In this document: positions 23,222 to 34,900 of the stretch, one piece after another
Layout: each line of letters opens with the position of its first letter
Numbering within the stretch: the first letter of the stretch is position 1
Source of the DNA: Lenisia limosa
Lineage: Eukaryota; Protista; Breviatea
Direction: 5' to 3'
Length of the DNA: 41,559 nt
NCBI GenBank assembly: GCA_001655205.1
Contig: LPNZ01010237.1
Span: 1 to 41,559 of the forward strand
Notes under the pieces: model-generated
Told to the model about the DNA's origin: nothing
The model's database searches: none
The model's input: only the letters and a program-made list of their open reading frames with translations
Position numbers and translations under genes: made by a program

Positions 23222-23581
23222 AGTTGTTCTATTAGTCCCCNNNNNNNNNNNNNNNNNNNNNNNNNNNNNNNNNNNNNNNNNNNNNNNNNNNNNNNNNNNN
23301 NNNNNNNNNNNNNNNNNNNNNNNNNNNNNNNNNNNNNNNNNNNNNNNNNNNNNNNNNNNGGGCAAAGTGGTCTTTCTGCAATTAATATTAGGCCAAACTG
23401 AGTCTAAAGCATCCACAACCAAACATCAAAGCGTTGCATCCAAATACACATAAACCGACCATCAACCAACTATTTACACTAAATGGTTTCACATGCCGAG
23501 GTGTAATTCTGTGTTTACATCCTTTTCTGATATCGAAAATAAAAATAAGAAAAAAGATGCATTACGATATTCTAACAACAC

Positions 23582-26500
23582 TTAGAGGGTGAGGGTGGCG
23601 AGCATGCCGAGAACCTGAGCGGTGGACTTGGGCTCCTCGAACTTAGCGCCAATCTTGGTGCAGACGGCCTTCATGGCGTCCTTCTCGGCGTGGATGTTGG
23701 CAATGAGCTCCTTGTAGCCCTGAAGAGAGTTAACTTGACTCCATCATAATCGTATCAATAGAAGGAACAAACGAGGCCTCGAAACAATCACTTATGCATA
23801 CCTCAGCCTTAGCCATCTCGATGATGTGGTTGAGGATGGCCATTCCGAGGCCTTGGCGGCGGTTGGTGGGGTCGACGAGAACAACCCACTCACCTACACG
23901 AGTTATTGGGGAAAGATGTACACAAAGATGACCAATTTGACTTCACAGTACAGTATATCATGAAAGACACCTACCAGCGGTCTGCTTGGAGAGAACGCGA
24001 GTAAGACGGCCCATTGCAACGATCTTGCCCTCGACCTCAGCGATAACGGGGATTTCGTAGTCGTAGTTACCGAAGAACATGCCACGAGCCTGGAGAGCCT
24101 CCATCTTGGTCTTGGCAGCATTGCGAAGGCGAAGGTACTTGTAGGCGGGCTAAAGGGGTCAGAAAAGACGCTGAATGGGAGCAATGGTACAAAAAACAGC
24201 AGTATTGCGTAACACACCTCATCCTGGGCCTCCTCAATGACAGAAGCTGGGAGTCCATCGAAGAAAGCGGAAAGAAGAGGCTCATCCTCGGGGCGGACGG
24301 GGCGGATCTGGACGTCCTTATCTCCGGCCTTAACAACCTTCTCGTACTCCTGGGGGTAAGAGCGGATGGCGCCCTTGACCTTGTCTTCAGCGTTCTTGTG
24401 GAGGAGGACACGAGCGTCGAGAGCGACAAGCTCGGTCTCGGAAATGAGAAGGGGGTTGATGTCGAGCTCAGCAATCCATTCGTGCTCGTGGATGAGCTGG
24501 GAAAGGTTGACGAGGACGGCAGTGAGAGCCTCCATGTCACAGGGGCCGAGGCCACGGACACCACGAAGAGCAGTGGCAATCCTAGATGGTGAATTGTTGG
24601 GTGAACACAAAAAGAAGAAGGGTAGTGATTAGGAGGAAGAAAAAACAATTTGGCGTACTTAGTCTGGTCGATGAGATCGCGGGCATGCTGGGCGGAGAGG
24701 GGAGGGATGGTAAGAGCGGTATCCTTGAACACCTCTACGAGGGTTCCACCGGAGCCGAAGACCATGACGGGGCCGAACTGGGGGTCGGTAGTGCAACCAC
24801 AGAGGAGCTCATAGCTGAAGGTCATAAGTAAAGAATGGAAGGGGCGGGGGNNNNNNNNNNNNNNNNNNNNNNNNNNNNNNNNNNNNNNNNNNNNNNNNNN
24901 NNNNNNNNNNNNNNNNNNNNNNNNNNNNNNNNNNNNNNNNNNNNNNNNNNNNNNNNNNNNNNNNNNNATGCGTTGGACGGAGACACCGCCGAAGTGCTCG
25001 GCACCAGCCTTGGTGGTAACGTTGTGCTTGATGGTCTCGAAACCGGCCTTGACGGCAGCAGTGTCCTTGATGTTGAGGAGAACACCTCCGATGTCGGACT
25101 TGTGGGTGAGAGTGTCGGAGTGAATCTTGAGAACGACGGGGAAGCCGAGCTTCTCAGCGGCGGCAGCGCACTCATCGACGGAAGTGGTCACAACAGTGGA
25201 GCAGACTGAAGGAGGTTAGTTGATAACAACACAATTCTAAATCTGGGGAAAAGGTAGAGTGAATACCGGGGATCTTGTAGGCGGCGAGGACCTCCTTAGA
25301 CTCATGCTCGGAGAGGATGTCACGGTTCTCGGAACGGGCCTTCTCGAGGATGGCGTTGACAGCGTCCTTAGCGACGGTGGCCTGGGAGGNNNNNNNNNNN
25401 NNNNNNNNNNNNNNNNNNNNNNNNNNNNNNNNNNNNNNNNNNNNNNNNNNNNNNNNNNNNNNNNNNNNNNNNNNNNNNNNNNNNNNNNNNNNNNNNNNNN
25501 NNNNNNNNNNNNNNNNNNNNNNNNNNNNNNNNNNNNNNNNNNNNNNNNNNNNNNNNNNNNNNNNNNNNNNNNNNNTAAAACAAAAAGGAACCCAGACCAG
25601 TTGATTCGGCAACACTGCATCACATCACTCCACAGCGTATGGGGGGAGGAGGAATAAGCTAGAAAAAAAAGGAGCCAACCTCGGTGGCAAGAGCCTTAGG
25701 GATAGCAATTGGGGTAGTGTAGAGGCTCTCGAGGTTGTGGCTGTACTTCCACATGAAGTTGAACATGCGGCAGGCGGTATCGGGGTACTCGAAAACGGGG
25801 ATGCCACACTGGGTGAGGATGTCCTTACCCTTCTGGACGGAGTCAGCTCCCATCCATGAGCAGAGGAGGGGCTAAATGGGTCAGACGTGAACGGATGCCA
25901 TCAGAAAAAAGATAGAAAAACTAATGAAAGACAAACCTTGCCGGCGGCGCGGAACTTCTCGGCAATCTTGGAAACGTGCTCAGCAGTGGCAGTGGGGTCA
26001 GTCATGTCCTGTTGTGGACATTAGATGGCAATACAATTAGGGTTGATAAGAAGACAAGATAACCAACCTGGGGAGTGAGGATGACGAGGGCACCGTCGTT
26101 CTTCTCGTCCTCAACAAGGAACTCGAGGGACTTGGCGTAGCTGAATGGTCAAAAGTGTGTTCAGAAGTAGTTGAATCAAAAAAAAAACAATTACGTAAGC
26201 TTACAGCTCGGGCTTGGCGTCACCAAGGATATCGACGGGGTTACCACGAGACCAAGCACCGGGGAGGATGGAAGAGAGCTGGTCGAAAGTGTCCTTAGAG
26301 ATCTCGGCAAGCTCGCCACCGGCAGAGCAGAGAGCGTCAGTGGCAAGAACGGCGGGACCACCAGCGTTGGTGAGGATGGTCAGACGGTTGCCAGCAGGCT
26401 TGGGCTGCTTGGAAAGGACCTGTGACATGAAGAAGAGGTCTTCGATGTGGTCAACACGGAGAACACCGGCGCGCTCGAAAGCAGCATCGAGGGTCTTATC

Positions 26501-27633
26501 TACATATGTGAGCGAAGAAACGAGAGTAGAGAATGGTAATGGTAGAAATGCATACCGGAACCGGCGAGGGTACCGGTGTGAGAAGCAGCAGCAGCGGCAG
26601 CAGCCTCAGTACGGCCAGACTTGATAACAATGATGGGCTTGTTGAGAGCGACTAAAAAACAATAAGCAAATATTAATTAAACACAATTAGATATCAGAGA
26701 TTATCACTCACCAGTACGGGCAGCGTTGAGGAACTCGCGAGCGTTACCAATAGATTCCATATAGATGATAATGGACTCAGTGGTGGCGTCCTGGCCAAGG
26801 TAGGAGATGAGATCACCCCACTTGAGGTCAACCATGGAACCGATGGAGATGAAGTGAGAGAAACCGATCTGCTCCTAAAAATAATGTGAGTGGCCGAAAA
26901 AAGAAGAATGCTGAAAATGATTCGGGGGGTAGCTTTCAAACACTAACCTTGTGGGCCCAATCGAGGATGGCAGTGCAGAGAGCGCCAGACTGAGAGATGA
27001 AGGCGACGGAACCCTTACGGGCCTGAGAGTTGGCGAAAGTAGCATTGAGACCAGAAACTAAAAAAAATATAAACTTTTGGTCCGTTTGGAGTGATTCTTA
27101 CCAGGGGAAAGAAGACCAAGGCAGTTAGGACCAAGGATGCGGATGCGTCCCTTAGCGGCTTCACCCATGAACTGGTCAATGAGAACCTGTCCTTCCTCTC
27201 CCATCTCAGCGAAACCAGCGGAGAGAACGATGGCGGCAGGCACATCGCAGGCAACAAGGTCCTAAAGTCCCATTAGAAGCGTGTTAAATACATATTCGGG
27301 TATAATGACAACAAGAGCACACCTTAATGCAACCAGCAACGTGGTGGGCAGGAACGCAGATGCAGGCAAGGTCAATCTTCTCAGGGATCTTAGAGACAGA
27401 GGTGTAGGCCTGAAGATAGTAAAAAGAAGGTTCTCCAAAAAAAAAAAACTCACGCGAATGCCAAGAACACTGGGGCGCTTGGGGTTCACTGGGTAAACGG
27501 TACCGCCAAAGGGAGAAGAGACGATGTTCTTAAGAAGCACACGTCCAACAGATCCAACCTTCTCGGTGGCGCCAATGACGGCGACAGCCTTAGGGAAGAA
27601 GAGATTATCAAGAGGGGAATCAACCTTAACCAT
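23582..27633 (-). CDS. ADP-forming acetate-CoA ligase (fused alpha/beta, ATP-grasp) with C-terminal GNAT acetyltransferase domain; about 15 introns
   Basis: [30 protein letters not shown] (CoA binding), [30 protein letters not shown] (phospho-His), [57 protein letters not shown] and ELDINPLL. These are followed by the GNAT region IRPVRPEDE...[16 protein letters not shown] at 23582-23584. Confidence 0.93.
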
Positions 27634-27690: not shown

Positions 27691-28170
27691 TGCGTTATAG
27701 CGCCAAGTTTTTGCGCAATATTTGTTACGAGTATCCGGCTACAAGGCGCTATCTGCTGTTATTCCGCCGAATATATTTATATTCTATAGTTATATATGAG
27801 AATAGATTGCAATTAGCACCTTAAAAGGAATATCCGATCCCGAAATGAATGGCTCGGATGTAAATCCGAGATTCACATTTTGATCTTGTGCTCCCGACTC
27901 CCGATGAGTATAGATTCTCGGTTTCTCCTGCTTAATGTGTGAAATATTGATCGAACGTGGGGAGATGATATTCGTTCGTTGTATCTCCTTAATAATGCCC
28001 ATATATTTGCTCTCACAACACACACCACTCTCAACTATTTTTTGATTTCACTCTCAACAATCTTCAACAGCCCCCTGCTCAGTGATCATTCATTTGATAT
28101 ATTTGTGAGATACAATTCCGAAAGGATTTCTTGATACACTATATCAAGAGATAGAAAGAAACAATGACAC

Positions 28171-29704
28171 TTAAGCCTTGAAGACACGCTGGGTGTTGCG
28201 CTTGCAGAGAGCACGGAGGGTCTCGGGGACGGAGTCGAACTTGCCGAGGAGGATGGCGGAGGCAATGACGTAAGGCTTGTGAGAGGCCTCGTCGTAAGTC
28301 TCCTTCCGGTAGCGCTCGAAGACGGAAAGGGCGACTTCACCGTTGACGGCGTTGAGGCCAGTGATGTCAGCGGGGAGGCAATGCATGTAGTGGGCCTTGC
28401 CGCCATTGGTAAGGGCCATGAGCTCCTCAGTGCACTCCCAGTCGAGGTGCTTGGCGTTGTTAGCAAGGCACTCCTTCTCGAGAGCAGCGAGCTTGGTCTT
28501 AGAGTCTTCCTCACGGAGGAGCTTGACGCGACGCTCCATGACGTGGAAAGGAGCCCATGACTTGGGGTAGACAACATCGGCATCTGAGAAGTCATGTGGT
28601 ACCACCATATATGTTGAAAAAAGAAAGACGCCCACATACCCTTGAAGGCTTCGGCCATAGTGGCAACCTGGGTGAACTTTCCACCACCGAGCTCAGCACA
28701 CTTCTTAGCCTCGTCTAAAATAATGAGATTGTTCACGAAGAGGCTGAACATCAAATGTGAGCGCAGAAAATATGCAACATTCAGAGAGAGATCCCCACAT
28801 ACCGACGATCTCGGGGAGGAGACCGTAGCCCTCGGGGTGAGCGAGACGGACCTCGGCACCAAAGCGGGGGAGGAGAGTGATCAAAGACTGGGGAACGGAA
28901 AGAGGCTTTCCGTAGGCGGGAGACATAGCCCAGGTGACAGCAATCTTCTTGCCCTTAACACCTTCGAGACCACCGTAGAGAGAAGCGATGTGGAGGAGAT
29001 CGGACATAGATTGAGTGGGGTGGTCCTGATCGCACTGGAGGTTGACGAGGACGGGGCGCTGGGGGAGAACACCCTCCTGAATTGATTAGAATAAAGTGAA
29101 AAAAACGAAAAGAGAGGAGGGAAGAGGAAGTCACACAAAAAAAAAGATTTATTCCAGGAATTGTCACAAGGTCACGTCCACAAACATCGAAGCCTTGCTG
29201 GACAGCGGTGGCAACCTCAGTCTGGTACTTATGACCCTCATGGATGTAGAGATCGTCACGGATACCGATAACCTCAGTAAGGAAAGAGATCATGTTGGCG
29301 GTTTCACGGACAGTCTCACCATGAGAGATCTGGGACTTAGCCTCATCAAGGTCGTTGACGGTAAGGCCAAGGAGCTGGCAAGCGGAAGCGAAAGAGAAAC
29401 GAGCTAAAAATGATAAATTACAAAAGGCAACTTGAGGAACATACTGCGAGTGGAGTTATCACGGAAGTTAGAGACAGCAAGTCCAGAGTTGAAGACCTTG
29501 CAGTCAATGTTCTCCTTGTACATCTCCTCGAGGCAACGAGCAGTGTAGAAAACAGCCTCAACCTGAGCCTGGGTCATCTTCCAGGTGCGAAGGTAGTCTA
29601 AAAAAGTAAAACCTTTCCTGGCATGCTCAAAACTAACCCTTGCCCTTCCATTCGGCACCAGTGGCCTCAAGCTTGTTGATAAGTTCCTGGATCTTCTGAG
29701 ACAT
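28171..29704 (-). CDS. ygeW: YgeW-type knotted carbamoyltransferase (bacterial family) with five spliceosomal introns
   Basis: The spliced protein is collinear with E. coli YgeW as I recall it: KVFNSGLAVSNFRDNSTRTRFSFAS, SQISHGETVRETANMISF, IGIRDD, GVLPQRPVLVNLQCDQDHPTQSMSDL, KGKKIAVTWAMSPAYGKPLSVPQ, LAHPEGY, DADVVYPKSWAP, YMHCLPADI, EASHKPYVIA. Introns at about 29598-29637, 29404-29444, 29077-29184, 28715-28802 and 28584-28638, all GT-AG. Confidence 0.93.
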
Positions 29705-29979
29705 TATTACCAAAAATAGGGAGGAGATATTCTCGAAAAAAAATCTGTGAAAAGATAACTGGGTGACCAGTTCAGTTCATTCCTTCTGGAATGTTCGATA
29801 ATAATGTTGTTCCTTTTTTGGCTCGCGCACATATTTCTTTTTCTCTTCTCCCTATTTCCAACCTTCCAACCTGTTTCTAGAATAAAAAAGATAGAAATAA
29901 GAAAGAAAGCCCTATTAGTTTGTTTCGCCACAAATAAGTCCTCTCTACTACAGGTTTTTTTCACCTTTTCTCAAATTTA
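29705..29979. promoter_or_regulatory. Bidirectional promoter region ygeW / TFB5
   Basis: 275 nt between divergent start codons. It contains TTC-TG-GAA-TG-TTC (29784-29796) and two 6-4-6 palindromes. Confidence 0.55.
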
Positions 29980-31931: not shown

Positions 31932-34900
31932 TTACTCTTCGTCGAAAGGAAGGGGCTTGTTAAGCGACTGGAAAATTAGAATTTAGAAGAGGAAGAATCT
32001 AAGAAAATGTAATGGAAAATATTGGGGAAAAATCCCCCATACTTTGACTGCATCAAGGAAATCAACCGGTTTGATCAGGCGGGGGCCGCCAATAACAATG
32101 GGACGGTTGAACTGTTCGGAAAGCTCATACGCCACACGGGCTTCACTGAATGTCAACCCTCCTAGAAAGTAAACACAACACGATTGACAAAAATCATTCA
32201 CCTTCCCAATAACCAATAACATAGGCATATCATTATTTACAACATCTAGGATAATATTATATGACATGATATGTAGTGAGTTGCAATGAGAAAGAATAAG
32301 TGTGTTTACAACCGAGTAATTCCGCAATATTTATCGCATTCTGCGTTTCAAAACAAGATCAAGAGGATTAGCATGAAGACACTTTACTGTACCCCCAAAC
32401 CAGTCACGTAAATAATAAGGGGGGGTTTTCCGGCGGGTGACTTTGCAACCTTCTCTTTGCCTTTAGAAGCCCATGATCTAGATGTTGAATAATGCATCTA
32501 ACACTAAAATAATATCATCTAGAATGATTGAAATGATATTTGCGATATGATACATATTAAACTATTTAAGGTGGTTCAGTCGCTGTTGTGTTTTGCAAAA
32601 TAACACAAAAAAAAACCTACGCAGAAGTCTTCTTCTTCTGTTGTCCAGTGGAAAGTTTCAACTGGTCAGCTGTTGGCTTGCGGGTGAAGGGGTAAAGCTC
32701 CTCAGAGAGGGTATCTCCAAGGAAATCCTGCATTCGTCAAGCAATGAAAAATGCTGATAATTCAGAAGTTGTTCGTTTCGTCAACAGAAAAATGACACAT
32801 GTTCACCACCCTCACTTGCCCGCATACCTCAGCGACATCCCTCAGCGAGGGCTGGAAACGCGATAAGTCATAGCTTACGTCTCTGTTGGATGGCCTGTTG
32901 GACTTGCTGTGCTTGCGATCCTTACGGTGGTTTGGTCCCTTAGCCTGCCACGTCAAAAATAATCCAAGATATCCATACCAGTGAAACGTTGAGGAAGGAG
33001 AGGTTGGCAAGAACATCTTGCTCTTCAGGTGATAGCACTGCATTTTTGACCAGCTGAAACAGTGAGACGGCAAAGGGGGGGGGGGGGGGNNNNNNNNNNN
33101 NNNNNNNNNNNNNNNNNNNNNNNNNNNNNNNNNNNNNNNNNNNNNNNNNNNNNNNNNNNNNNNNNNNNNNNNNNNNNNNNNNNNNNNNNNNNNNNNNNNA
33201 GTCTCACCACCGCTCGATCACCCAAACGGGAGGGGGGGGGTGTATGTAACAAGAAATTAAGTCACAGTTTCAGCTGAAATGATGGACAGAAACAAAAGAA
33301 CGAGCGCAATAGACACGACAGAACTAAAACGCTGTCAAAATATGCCAATGTTGACAATTATTGCTCAGATATCCAGCTGTCTCATGCAAAAGAACATACG
33401 GAGTCTTTTTCTGAAGCTGAGATGCCTTCAGATGTGATGATGTGGATCATGCTCAAACGAAGCTTGCTGTTGATGGCAATTTTGGGGTCCTAAAATGCAT
33501 TAGTATATAAAAGGGATGAGAAGGATCATTTTCGCAATTTAAACAAGTGCGCCCCACAAACTCTAAGGAGGTTGCTGAGTCTGGAGGCGACATTCTTCAC
33601 GGACTTGCCATCGACATCTTTGCCTGTGGCCATGTCCTTGAAAATATGAGAACAACGGTTTCCCTCCAGTTGGAAAATGACTGGTAAATATCGATATTTA
33701 TCGGTTTTTGATCGAGAATCTATCGAGAATCTATCGAGAAATCCAATCTTTTCATCGGAGTGATATGAAGCACTAACAAATCCAAACTTCTCAACGAAAC
33801 CCCCCGTATCTTCCTAGGTGGCAGTGCCAACCTGTTCTAATGAAGCACATTCCTCTACTTTCTGCTTTTTGAACTGAGTCATACAGTCCTATACAGTAAA
33901 TATTACCACACACACGATACTACGATGCTTTCTAAATTATTTGAGTATCAAAAATTAAATGAATATTGCACAGGAAAGGGGAAGTAGTGCAATGCAATCT
34001 CACGTCGCAAGCTGTGATGTGGGTTTCAAAAGCCATAATTTGCTCTCTGAACTCGGGAACTGCACGAATCAACTGACTCATCTCGGCAAGGCTAACCTGG
34101 ACTTATGAGACATAAAATGAACGTTTTGAATCAGTTCAAGAATTAGGTAATACCTATTAAATCCATGTACATGCTGGGTGAATAAAAACAAAATATACTA
34201 TCAAACAAAACGTACAGCCCCCCACCCCAAATTGAGACACAAATAGATGAAAAAAAAAATATTTGTGTAAGGTGTTGAATCACGAACTATAAGGGGGGGG
34301 GGGGATCGCAAAATGTACATGTAGGTACAAACACAACCGAATCCCTCCAGTTAATGACACCCATCAATAATGCGACAATTTGAAACAACAAAAGAAAAAA
34401 ATCCCAGACCAGCTGCTGCATCATATCACAATACTCCTCCTCAATACTGAAGCCCAAACCCACGTCCTTTCCGTGTCCAATGGCAGCCTTGTTTGTTGAA
34501 GAAAAGTCCGAGAACTCCTTGTTAATATCGACAATAGCTTCAGCAATATGCTTGTGACGATTTCTCACCCATATCTCATCCTTGTCATCAAGAATTACCT
34601 GGAAACGTGATAAAAATGGATCTGGGGGGAATCGGGGTGGAGGGATTCTACTTAACATTTTTGTTTGGGGAGATGCCAAAGAAGTCACTAGTTTGAAGCA
34701 TACTTCTCTAGCAGCAGAGTTGGGGGATGGAGTGTACTTCAAAATTCCATTATCAATGTCGAGTAAATCTTCAACCATTGCCTGAACACAATAAATATGA
34801 AAAAGGGAGGGTGACTGTGTCCGAAGCCAGACCAATAAAACCAACCTGATACGTCAACTCATGAAGGAGAGGAGCAATTGTGTCCGAAATTCTATCAACA

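Follow-up and report, generated by a model that had tools for sequence, protein, structure and literature searches.

An expressed, intron-containing ygeW transcarbamylase gene in the breviate Lenisia limosa, probably of bacterial origin

The genome of the breviate Lenisia limosa contains a gene for a carbamoyltransferase of the YgeW type. It is located at positions 28171-29704, on the minus strand, of the window analyzed here, which is a 41,559-nt stretch of DNA (assembly GCA_001655205.1, contig LPNZ01010237.1, positions 1 to 41,559). Most probably, this is a functional, expressed nuclear gene that was acquired laterally from bacteria and has since gained five introns, and for its product we infer a catabolic role. 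An earlier reading of the window, made from the sequence alone, had proposed such a transfer.

The gene starts with an ATG at 29704 and ends with a TAA whose last base is at 28171, exactly the span given in the sequence-only reading. When the minus strand of 28100-29800 is read and spliced, it yields a coding sequence (CDS) of 1200 nt in six exons, encoding 399 amino acids (aa). The five introns are all of the GT-AG type, with lengths of 40, 41, 109, 88, and 56 nt, and their GC content is 0.29-0.41 versus 0.56 in the CDS. The locus was found in two public sequencing runs, X1 (DNA) and X2 (a polyA-selected metatranscriptome). In X2, a 1258-nt RNA contig with a word depth of 773 maps to 28124-29715 and omits precisely the five predicted introns. 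The missing intervals read CT..AC on the plus strand, that is, GT..AG on the strand of ygeW. In X1, the same locus is carried unspliced in a single 177-kb record. Thus, the RNA-seq comparison proposed for the five GT-AG introns finds a spliced transcript from which each of them is absent, while all are present in the DNA run.

The four large exons each match the NCBIfam YgeW equivalog models best, and they do so colinearly (E-values of 1e-14, 8e-35, 8e-44, and 1e-53). Their bit scores, summed over separately scored exons with exons 1 and 5 unscored rather than obtained for the whole protein, total 499.5 against the NF005538 cut-off of 453, and 485 against the TIGR03316 cut-off of 500. The models of ornithine, aspartate, and acetylornithine transcarbamylases (OTC, ATC, and AOTC, respectively) match the window exons with E-values of 1e-4 to 6e-9 and 17-35 bits per exon, compared with 51-183 bits for YgeW. 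A canonical OTC or ATC identity was rejected, as these profiles are far weaker than those of YgeW for every large exon. In Pfam, the exons match just the generic OTCace_N and OTCace domains. Exon 6 matches only two solved structures, those of YgeW from Escherichia coli (3Q98) and Enterococcus faecalis (2YFK). A global alignment of the spliced protein with E. coli YgeW (NC_000913) shows 57.8% identity and a single one-residue indel, and both ends match, the N-terminus of the window protein pairing with residue 1 of E. coli YgeW. From these profiles and alignments, we identify the window protein as a genuine orthologue of YgeW rather than an OTC or ATC. The sequence-only reading had made the same assignment, and the profiles, the alignment, and the family residues agree with it; all six sequence blocks that it quoted are found in the spliced translation. 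Because the ends align with those of E. coli YgeW and only 11 nt of transcript precede the ATG, the protein has no N-terminal extension and probably lacks one for targeting, again in agreement with the earlier claim.

The exon structure, given here on the minus strand and supported throughout by the RNA contig, distributes the family motifs as follows. The contig starts at 29715, so that the 5' untranslated region (UTR) covers 11 nt (29705..29715) to the limit of the contig. Exon 1 (29638..29704, 67 nt) runs from the start codon through residue 22 to the first base of codon 23, and its translation corresponds in the alignment to the N-terminal helix of the E. coli protein; it is followed by intron 1 (29598..29637, 40 nt, GTTAGT...TAG). 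Exon 2 (29445..29597, 153 nt, YgeW profile positions 21-70) ends within the carbamoyl-phosphate motif STRT, where intron 2 (29404..29444, 41 nt, GTATGT...TAG) interrupts codon 74 in phase 1. Exon 3 (29186..29403, 218 nt, profile positions 72-143, E 8e-35) encodes the 80's loop with Q98, as well as R122 and D124, and is followed by the phase 0 intron 3 (29077..29185, 109 nt, GTTTGT...CAG). Exon 4 (28803..29076, 274 nt, profile positions 144-237, E 8e-44) contains Q160, the HPTQ motif, and the proline-rich loop SPAYGKPLSVPQ. It is separated by intron 4 (28715..28802, 88 nt, GTATGT...TAG) from exon 5 (28640..28714, 75 nt), which is defined by the spliced translation and the RNA contig, and intron 5 (28584..28639, 56 nt, GTATGT...CAG) follows. 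Exon 6 (28171..28583, 413 nt, profile positions 261-391, E 1e-53), the one matching 3Q98 and 2YFK, contributes K270 and K365, along with the extended 240's region, the HCLP motif, and the C-terminal helix, and contains the stop codon. The 3' UTR extends for 47 nt (28124..28170) to the limit of the contig.

The residues conserved between the window protein and E. coli YgeW are S71, T72, R73, T74, Q98, R122, D124, Q160, H165, Q168, K203, and K270, the Cys and Leu of HCLP, and D334, E344, and K364 in E. coli numbering (K363 in the residue table of PMC4581275 corresponds to K364 in YgeW of strain MG1655). The carbamoyl-phosphate site, formed by SxRT, HPxQ, HxLP, Arg122, Gln98 of the 80's loop, and the Lys of SxKPY, is identical to that of E. 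coli YgeW. It is invariant across 203 family members, except that the Cys of HCLP is replaced by Pro in five of them. Of the seven putative second-substrate residues (Q160, K270, D124, S200, K203, D334, and E344; Table 1 in PMC4581275), six are identical. The seventh, S200, is replaced by Ala, a state shared with 24 of the 203 family members, including the bacterial sister sequence P0271 from a bacterial contig with 71% GC. Overall, the window protein differs at 6 of the 124 columns that are conserved at 95% or more. The substitution Y197M in the proline-rich loop is unique to it among the 203 sequences, and two rare states, M193V and the loss of C340, are common to the window protein and three environmental sequences: P0270, P0350, and the one on scaffold L001. 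The signatures of the knotted fold considered at the sequence level were the proline-rich loop, the extended 120's loop, the extra N- and C-terminal helices, and the long 240's insert; the loop SPAYGKPLSVPQ is present, and the alignment to the 3Q98 sequence contains the single one-residue indel. This pattern of conservation is what an enzyme with unaltered chemistry would show under purifying selection.

YgeW proteins are also found in other anaerobic eukaryotes. A profile derived from a TARA Oceans protein (P0023, described below) and the four large exons of the window gene was used to search a protein collection, from which the window's own protein was not recovered, being seemingly absent there. 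This search revealed eukaryotic homologues labelled as hypothetical proteins in Eukaryota sp. TZLM1-RC and TZLM3-RCL, and a further search added GEM-RC1. These three skoliomonad (metamonad) proteins, KAL0223714.1 (TZLM1-RC, Skoliomonas litria), RCL1_004001 (TZLM3-RCL), and GEMRC1_003638 (GEM-RC1), are full-length and 59-63% identical to the window protein. The GEM-RC1 copy, known from the protein search alone, is on a 3.7-Mb contig. The genes of TZLM1-RC and TZLM3-RCL (L084:10001-11261 and L085:10001-11356; GCA_040285825.1 and GCA_040285805.1) are on contigs of 2.5 and 3.9 Mb amid kinase, Stealth/Notch, cathepsin, and glycogen-debranching genes, and no pathway genes were seen near ygeW in these two loci. 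Both genes are interrupted by introns. In TZLM1-RC there are two 29-nt GT-AG introns, after CDS nucleotides 219 and 695, and neither position is used in the window gene. The introns of the TZLM3-RCL gene may be unusual; exact-match splice mapping did not fit them. The skoliomonad genome paper does not mention ygeW (PMC11316075). For Trichomonas vaginalis, Shi, Allewell and Tuchman mentioned in passing in 2015 a YgeW transcarbamylase (YTCase, XP_001326968) and probably a second one (PMC4581275). Thus, eukaryotic YgeW is not new as such, and the suggestion of the sequence-only reading that this step was undescribed in eukaryotes has to be toned down in view of the Trichomonas enzyme and the three skoliomonad copies. 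In the literature, we found no paper that links eukaryotic YgeW to the pathway elucidated in 2025 or treats it as a lateral transfer.

In all four tree builds (about 200 homologues overall), the window protein is located inside bacterial YgeW. Because of this nesting, a transfer from bacteria to eukaryotes is well supported by the phylogeny, as the tree proposed for checking it was expected to reveal. The nearest named sequences belong to a Deltaproteobacteria metagenome-assembled genome and to Planctomycetota. In a quick tree of 88 rows, the window protein is sister to the TARA sequence, with a support of 96 in the Shimodaira-Hasegawa-like approximate likelihood ratio test (SH-aLRT), in a Planctomycetota-rich group. 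A FastTree of 203 rows contains a group of seven, formed by the window protein, P0270, L001, P0350, P0328, and two skoliomonads. The first careful tree, of 58 rows, placed the skoliomonads apart from the window protein. Forcing them together gave trees that were better by 10.4 and 8.4 log-likelihood units (p-values of 0.65 and 0.67 in the approximately unbiased (AU) test), so the first tree was a local optimum, and its split of the eukaryotes is not relied on. An independent search found a tree uniting the window protein with the skoliomonads (ultrafast bootstrap (UFB) of 100 and 96). In a careful tree of 84 rows, with 26 sequences added, the window protein groups with P0270, L001, P0350, and P0328 (95/89), and this group is sister to the bacterial sequences P0284, P0290, P0271, and P0279 (98/96). 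The three skoliomonads, together with P0294 and P0286 (99/92), are placed beside Muiribacteriaceae (83/86), and uniting them with the window protein costs 1.7 log-likelihood units (AU p 0.48). The trees are compatible both with one transfer and with several (AU p 0.48-0.67); ygeW possibly entered eukaryotes more than once.

That ygeW occurs in the breviate, the skoliomonads, and Trichomonas, which are at least three anaerobic lineages distant from one another, could alternatively mean that the gene is ancient in eukaryotes, was passed on vertically, and has disappeared from most lineages. The AU test does not reject a clade of the window protein and the skoliomonads (p 0.65 and 0.48), and the best tree of one search contains it (UFB 100). 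Against this explanation, the eukaryotic sequences form one or two small clades deep among about 200 bacterial sequences from many phyla, and P0350, a gene of a bacterial operon (L082), is nested in the window's own group. Denser sampling shifts the skoliomonads to Muiribacteriaceae (83/86), the window introns share no position with those of the TZLM1-RC (S. litria) gene, the one skoliomonad gene mapped, and the distribution is limited to anaerobes. Given the small clades, the differing introns, and the anaerobe-only occurrence, vertical inheritance was rejected as very improbable. Wide vertical inheritance in eukaryotes was the pattern that the sequence-only reading had named as contradicting a transfer; the distribution observed is patchy, confined to anaerobes, and surrounded by bacterial sequences. 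Genes for anaerobic metabolism are commonly gained laterally by such protists.

The genes flanking ygeW are eukaryotic. A Sec1-family gene, identified with Pfam, is located beyond its 5' end (~31983-34844, minus strand). Beyond its 3' end there is an ADP-forming acetyl-CoA synthetase-like gene (23561-27530, minus strand; domains CoA_binding_2, Ligase_CoA_2, and ATP-grasp_5) with at least 16 GT-AG introns of 44-298 nt. The latter has its own 2656-nt polyA RNA contig (depth 164), which stops before ygeW; therefore, these are two separate transcripts and not a bicistron. The sequence-only reading had named SEC1 and TFB5 as the eukaryotic neighbors, of which the former is seen with Pfam and the latter could not be confirmed. 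The CDS of ygeW is GC-richer than its surroundings, as might be expected if the gene came from bacterial contamination or an assembly artefact and did not belong to the protist. This explanation is contradicted by the removal of five spliceosomal introns in polyA RNA, by the Sec1 gene and the gene with at least 16 introns on the same contig, and by the DNA run, which has the locus inside a long contig. Because these two genes flank ygeW, it is not bacterial contamination, and with the spliced RNA and the eukaryotic neighbors refuting that reading, its probability is negligible. A chimeric assembly is unlikely, as the DNA run has the locus in one 177-kb record and the RNA is spliced. The window contains 17 masked or unresolved runs of N of 10-207 nt (for example, 24851-24967, 25390-25575, and 33090-33199), several of them within the acetyl-CoA synthetase-like and Sec1 genes. 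The run at 24851-24967 is inside a stretch omitted by the RNA contig of the synthetase-like gene, where that contig has 18 letters of its own.

In bacteria, a scan of species-representative genomes detected at least 597 ygeW loci. The 80 retained from them come from at least 13 phyla, with Planctomycetota, Verrucomicrobiota, Bacteroidota, Spirochaetota, Bacillota, and Enterobacterales among the groups represented, and their proteins are 54-61% identical to the window protein end to end. Within 8 kb of ygeW, ygeY is found in 49 of these 80 loci, xdhD in 28, yqeA (carbamate kinase) and ssnA in 25 each, ygfK in 20, and hyuA in 18. A variant of this cluster related to the window's clade is provided by L082:1-11284 (JGI 3300082556, Ga0675950_004837), a compact operon ygeX-ygfK-ssnA-XDH-ygeW (XDH, xanthine dehydrogenase) with 63% GC and overlapping genes. 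Its xanthine dehydrogenase is a single chain of 1360 aa, whose stop codon overlaps the start of ygeW. The YgeW encoded there is P0350, which is bacterial, as follows from its location in such an operon. The closest bacterial relative, in L090, is without the classical cluster and is adjoined only by an Amidohydro_3 gene. A protein search with P0046 yielded only close relatives from Coriobacteriia.

Other relatives are environmental. A search of a representative library with exon 6 gave 315 clusters, none above 60% identity. The best full-length library match, P0023, joins YgeW to a YgeY-like M20 peptidase in one protein of 963 aa, which is encoded by a single open reading frame (ORF) on the TARA Oceans scaffold L001 (TARA_SAMEA4396988_METAG-scaffold_4683). 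Its YgeW part scores 523 bits on NF005538, and in the region L001:5208-12892 the gene is divergent from an adjoining gene for a 1416-aa single-chain xanthine dehydrogenase (Fer2, Fer2_2, FAD, and molybdenum cofactor (MoCo) domains). The fusion unites two steps that are close together in the urate pathway. Scaffold L001 may be eukaryotic, since coding sequence is sparse on it and one feature weakly resembles NOB1 (score 0.80); Pfam and ARAGORN searches of the scaffold yielded nothing that would settle a eukaryotic versus a bacterial origin. The environmental YgeWs nearest to the eukaryotic ones include L086:1-6789 (Logan ERR10753951), a contig with a low coding density and exon-like ORF fragments, and P0286 and P0270, which are on transcript-sized contigs (1243-1348 nt). 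These three may be further protist copies. P0397 (480 aa, NCBI, a 4.6-kb contig) is the fourth-best match by score (636 bits) to the skoliomonad protein; it is only 52% identical to that protein and 80 aa longer, and may represent a mis-modelled or intron-retaining eukaryotic ygeW gene.

It was only in 2025 that the YgeW reaction was identified, as the step at which gut bacteria conserve energy when breaking down urate anaerobically (PMC12507026). With phosphate, E. coli YgeW acts on 2,3-diureidopropionate, the product of HyuA, and yields albizziin together with carbamoyl phosphate, which supports ATP formation (PMC12507026). A second group assigned the cleavage to the 3-ureido group (PMC12990295). 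A commentary described the reductive urate pathway as restricted to anaerobic bacteria (PMC12990295). Because the active site is conserved, the same reaction may be expected in Lenisia, and by analogy with the bacterial biochemistry a catabolic, carbamoyl phosphate-releasing role is plausible. The most probable scenario is that a eukaryotic lineage took ygeW from bacteria and that the gene then gained five spliceosomal introns. The trimeric enzyme would be cytosolic and would operate catabolically, as in bacteria, using phosphate to cut one ureido group of 2,3-diureidopropionate, which arises by ring opening when urate is broken down reductively. This cleavage would yield a mono-ureido aminopropionate and carbamoyl phosphate, and a carbamate kinase would then convert the latter with ADP to ATP, CO2, and NH3. 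Carbamate kinase is a plausible partner, given that both it and OTC occur in the breviate Pygsuia (PMC5052871). The substrate could be supplied either by a complete pathway of the protist itself or by its bacterial prey or partners.

Several observations weigh against the interpretation of ygeW as a laterally acquired catabolic gene. A tblastn search of the 41.6-kb window with 15 proteins of the E. coli cluster detected only ygeW and no other urate-pathway gene; XdhD/YgfM, YgfK or UacX, SsnA, HyuA, YgeY, and YgeX all lack a counterpart there. Which ureido group is attacked by bacterial YgeW is still disputed (PMC12990295), and phosphorolysis is disfavoured thermodynamically unless a kinase is coupled to it (PMC12507026, PMC6022934). 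The branch of the window protein is long (0.75-0.87), and the trees, as reconstructed here, do not single out a donor lineage. The GC content at third codon positions is 0.69 in ygeW, 0.64-0.75 in the exons of the acetyl-CoA synthetase-like gene, and 0.40-0.44 in Sec1; the high value of ygeW could reflect either expression-linked codon bias or incomplete host adaptation and foreign origin. As for the cluster, its loss is expected in a eukaryote, and the neighborhood is a contextual feature, not a part of the protein.

The solitary position of ygeW in the window would also fit an acquired YgeW-family enzyme that was redirected, either to another ureido compound from digested bacteria or to an anabolic function, independently of the urate pathway. 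The skoliomonad copies likewise stand alone amid unrelated genes, the closest bacterial relative in L090 has just the Amidohydro_3 gene beside it, and the near-invariant WAYSPSYGKP loop is changed by Y197M and S200A. We consider such a redirection rather unlikely. All proposed second-substrate residues are kept save S200A, which occurs in bacterial YgeWs too, and departures affect only 6 of the 124 strongly conserved columns. Moreover, two members of the window's clade are embedded in uricolytic gene sets: the ygeX-ygfK-ssnA-XDH-ygeW operon of L082 and, in L001, the xanthine dehydrogenase gene beside the YgeW-YgeY fusion. The catabolic role is the preferred one.

The window ygeW belongs to a known kind of system and can be compared with several counterparts. 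The YgeW proteins of E. coli (YTCase, 3Q98) and E. faecalis (2YFK) are similar to it in sequence (57.8% identity to the former) and in length (399 versus 396 aa for E. coli). In contrast to the E. coli gene, the window gene is nuclear, contains five introns, and is solitary, outside any sigma-54-regulated uricolytic operon; its product carries S200A and Y197M in the proline-rich loop, and its activity is a prediction from sequence. The YTCase of T. vaginalis is also a YgeW-type transcarbamylase of an anaerobic eukaryote, one with arginine dihydrolase enzymes and carbamate kinase, but it comes from another supergroup (Parabasalia) and is mentioned only in passing in PMC4581275. The skoliomonad proteins are full-length orthologues, and the TZLM1-RC and TZLM3-RCL genes are intron-bearing and located on megabase eukaryotic contigs. 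The differences concern the intron positions in TZLM1-RC and the placement beside Muiribacteriaceae in the best-sampled tree, with a common origin not rejected. The OTC and carbamate kinase of the protist arginine deiminase pathway perform an analogous conversion, in which ureido phosphorolysis yields carbamoyl phosphate and carbamate kinase then forms ATP. The catabolic OTC and carbamate kinase genes of anaerobic protists are also thought to have moved laterally (PMC5052871). Such an OTC, however, belongs to the unknotted subfamily and acts on citrulline; the window exons match OTC with E-values of 1e-4 to 1e-5 and YgeW with 1e-35 to 1e-54.

In summary, the ygeW locus of Lenisia is a well-documented addition to the set of bacterial metabolic genes in anaerobic eukaryotes, given its introns, its transcript, its phylogeny, and the intron positions that differ between the two lineages examined. 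The occurrence of YgeW in skoliomonads, in Trichomonas, and in a free-living anaerobic protist, where it is strongly expressed from a spliced transcript and has retained its active site, indicates that at least the YgeW step of the pathway was recruited by eukaryotes, possibly more than once. There is a modest chance that the reductive 2,8-dioxopurine pathway of urate degradation operates, in full or in its lower half, in several anaerobic eukaryotes; the candidates may be Lenisia, the skoliomonads, Trichomonas, and the uncultured marine organism of scaffold L001. If so, the conversion of purine-derived ureides to carbamoyl phosphate would be a second source of substrate-level ATP beside the arginine deiminase pathway. 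The locus thus raises the hypothesis that some anaerobic protists may gain ATP from purine-derived ureides via carbamoyl phosphate.

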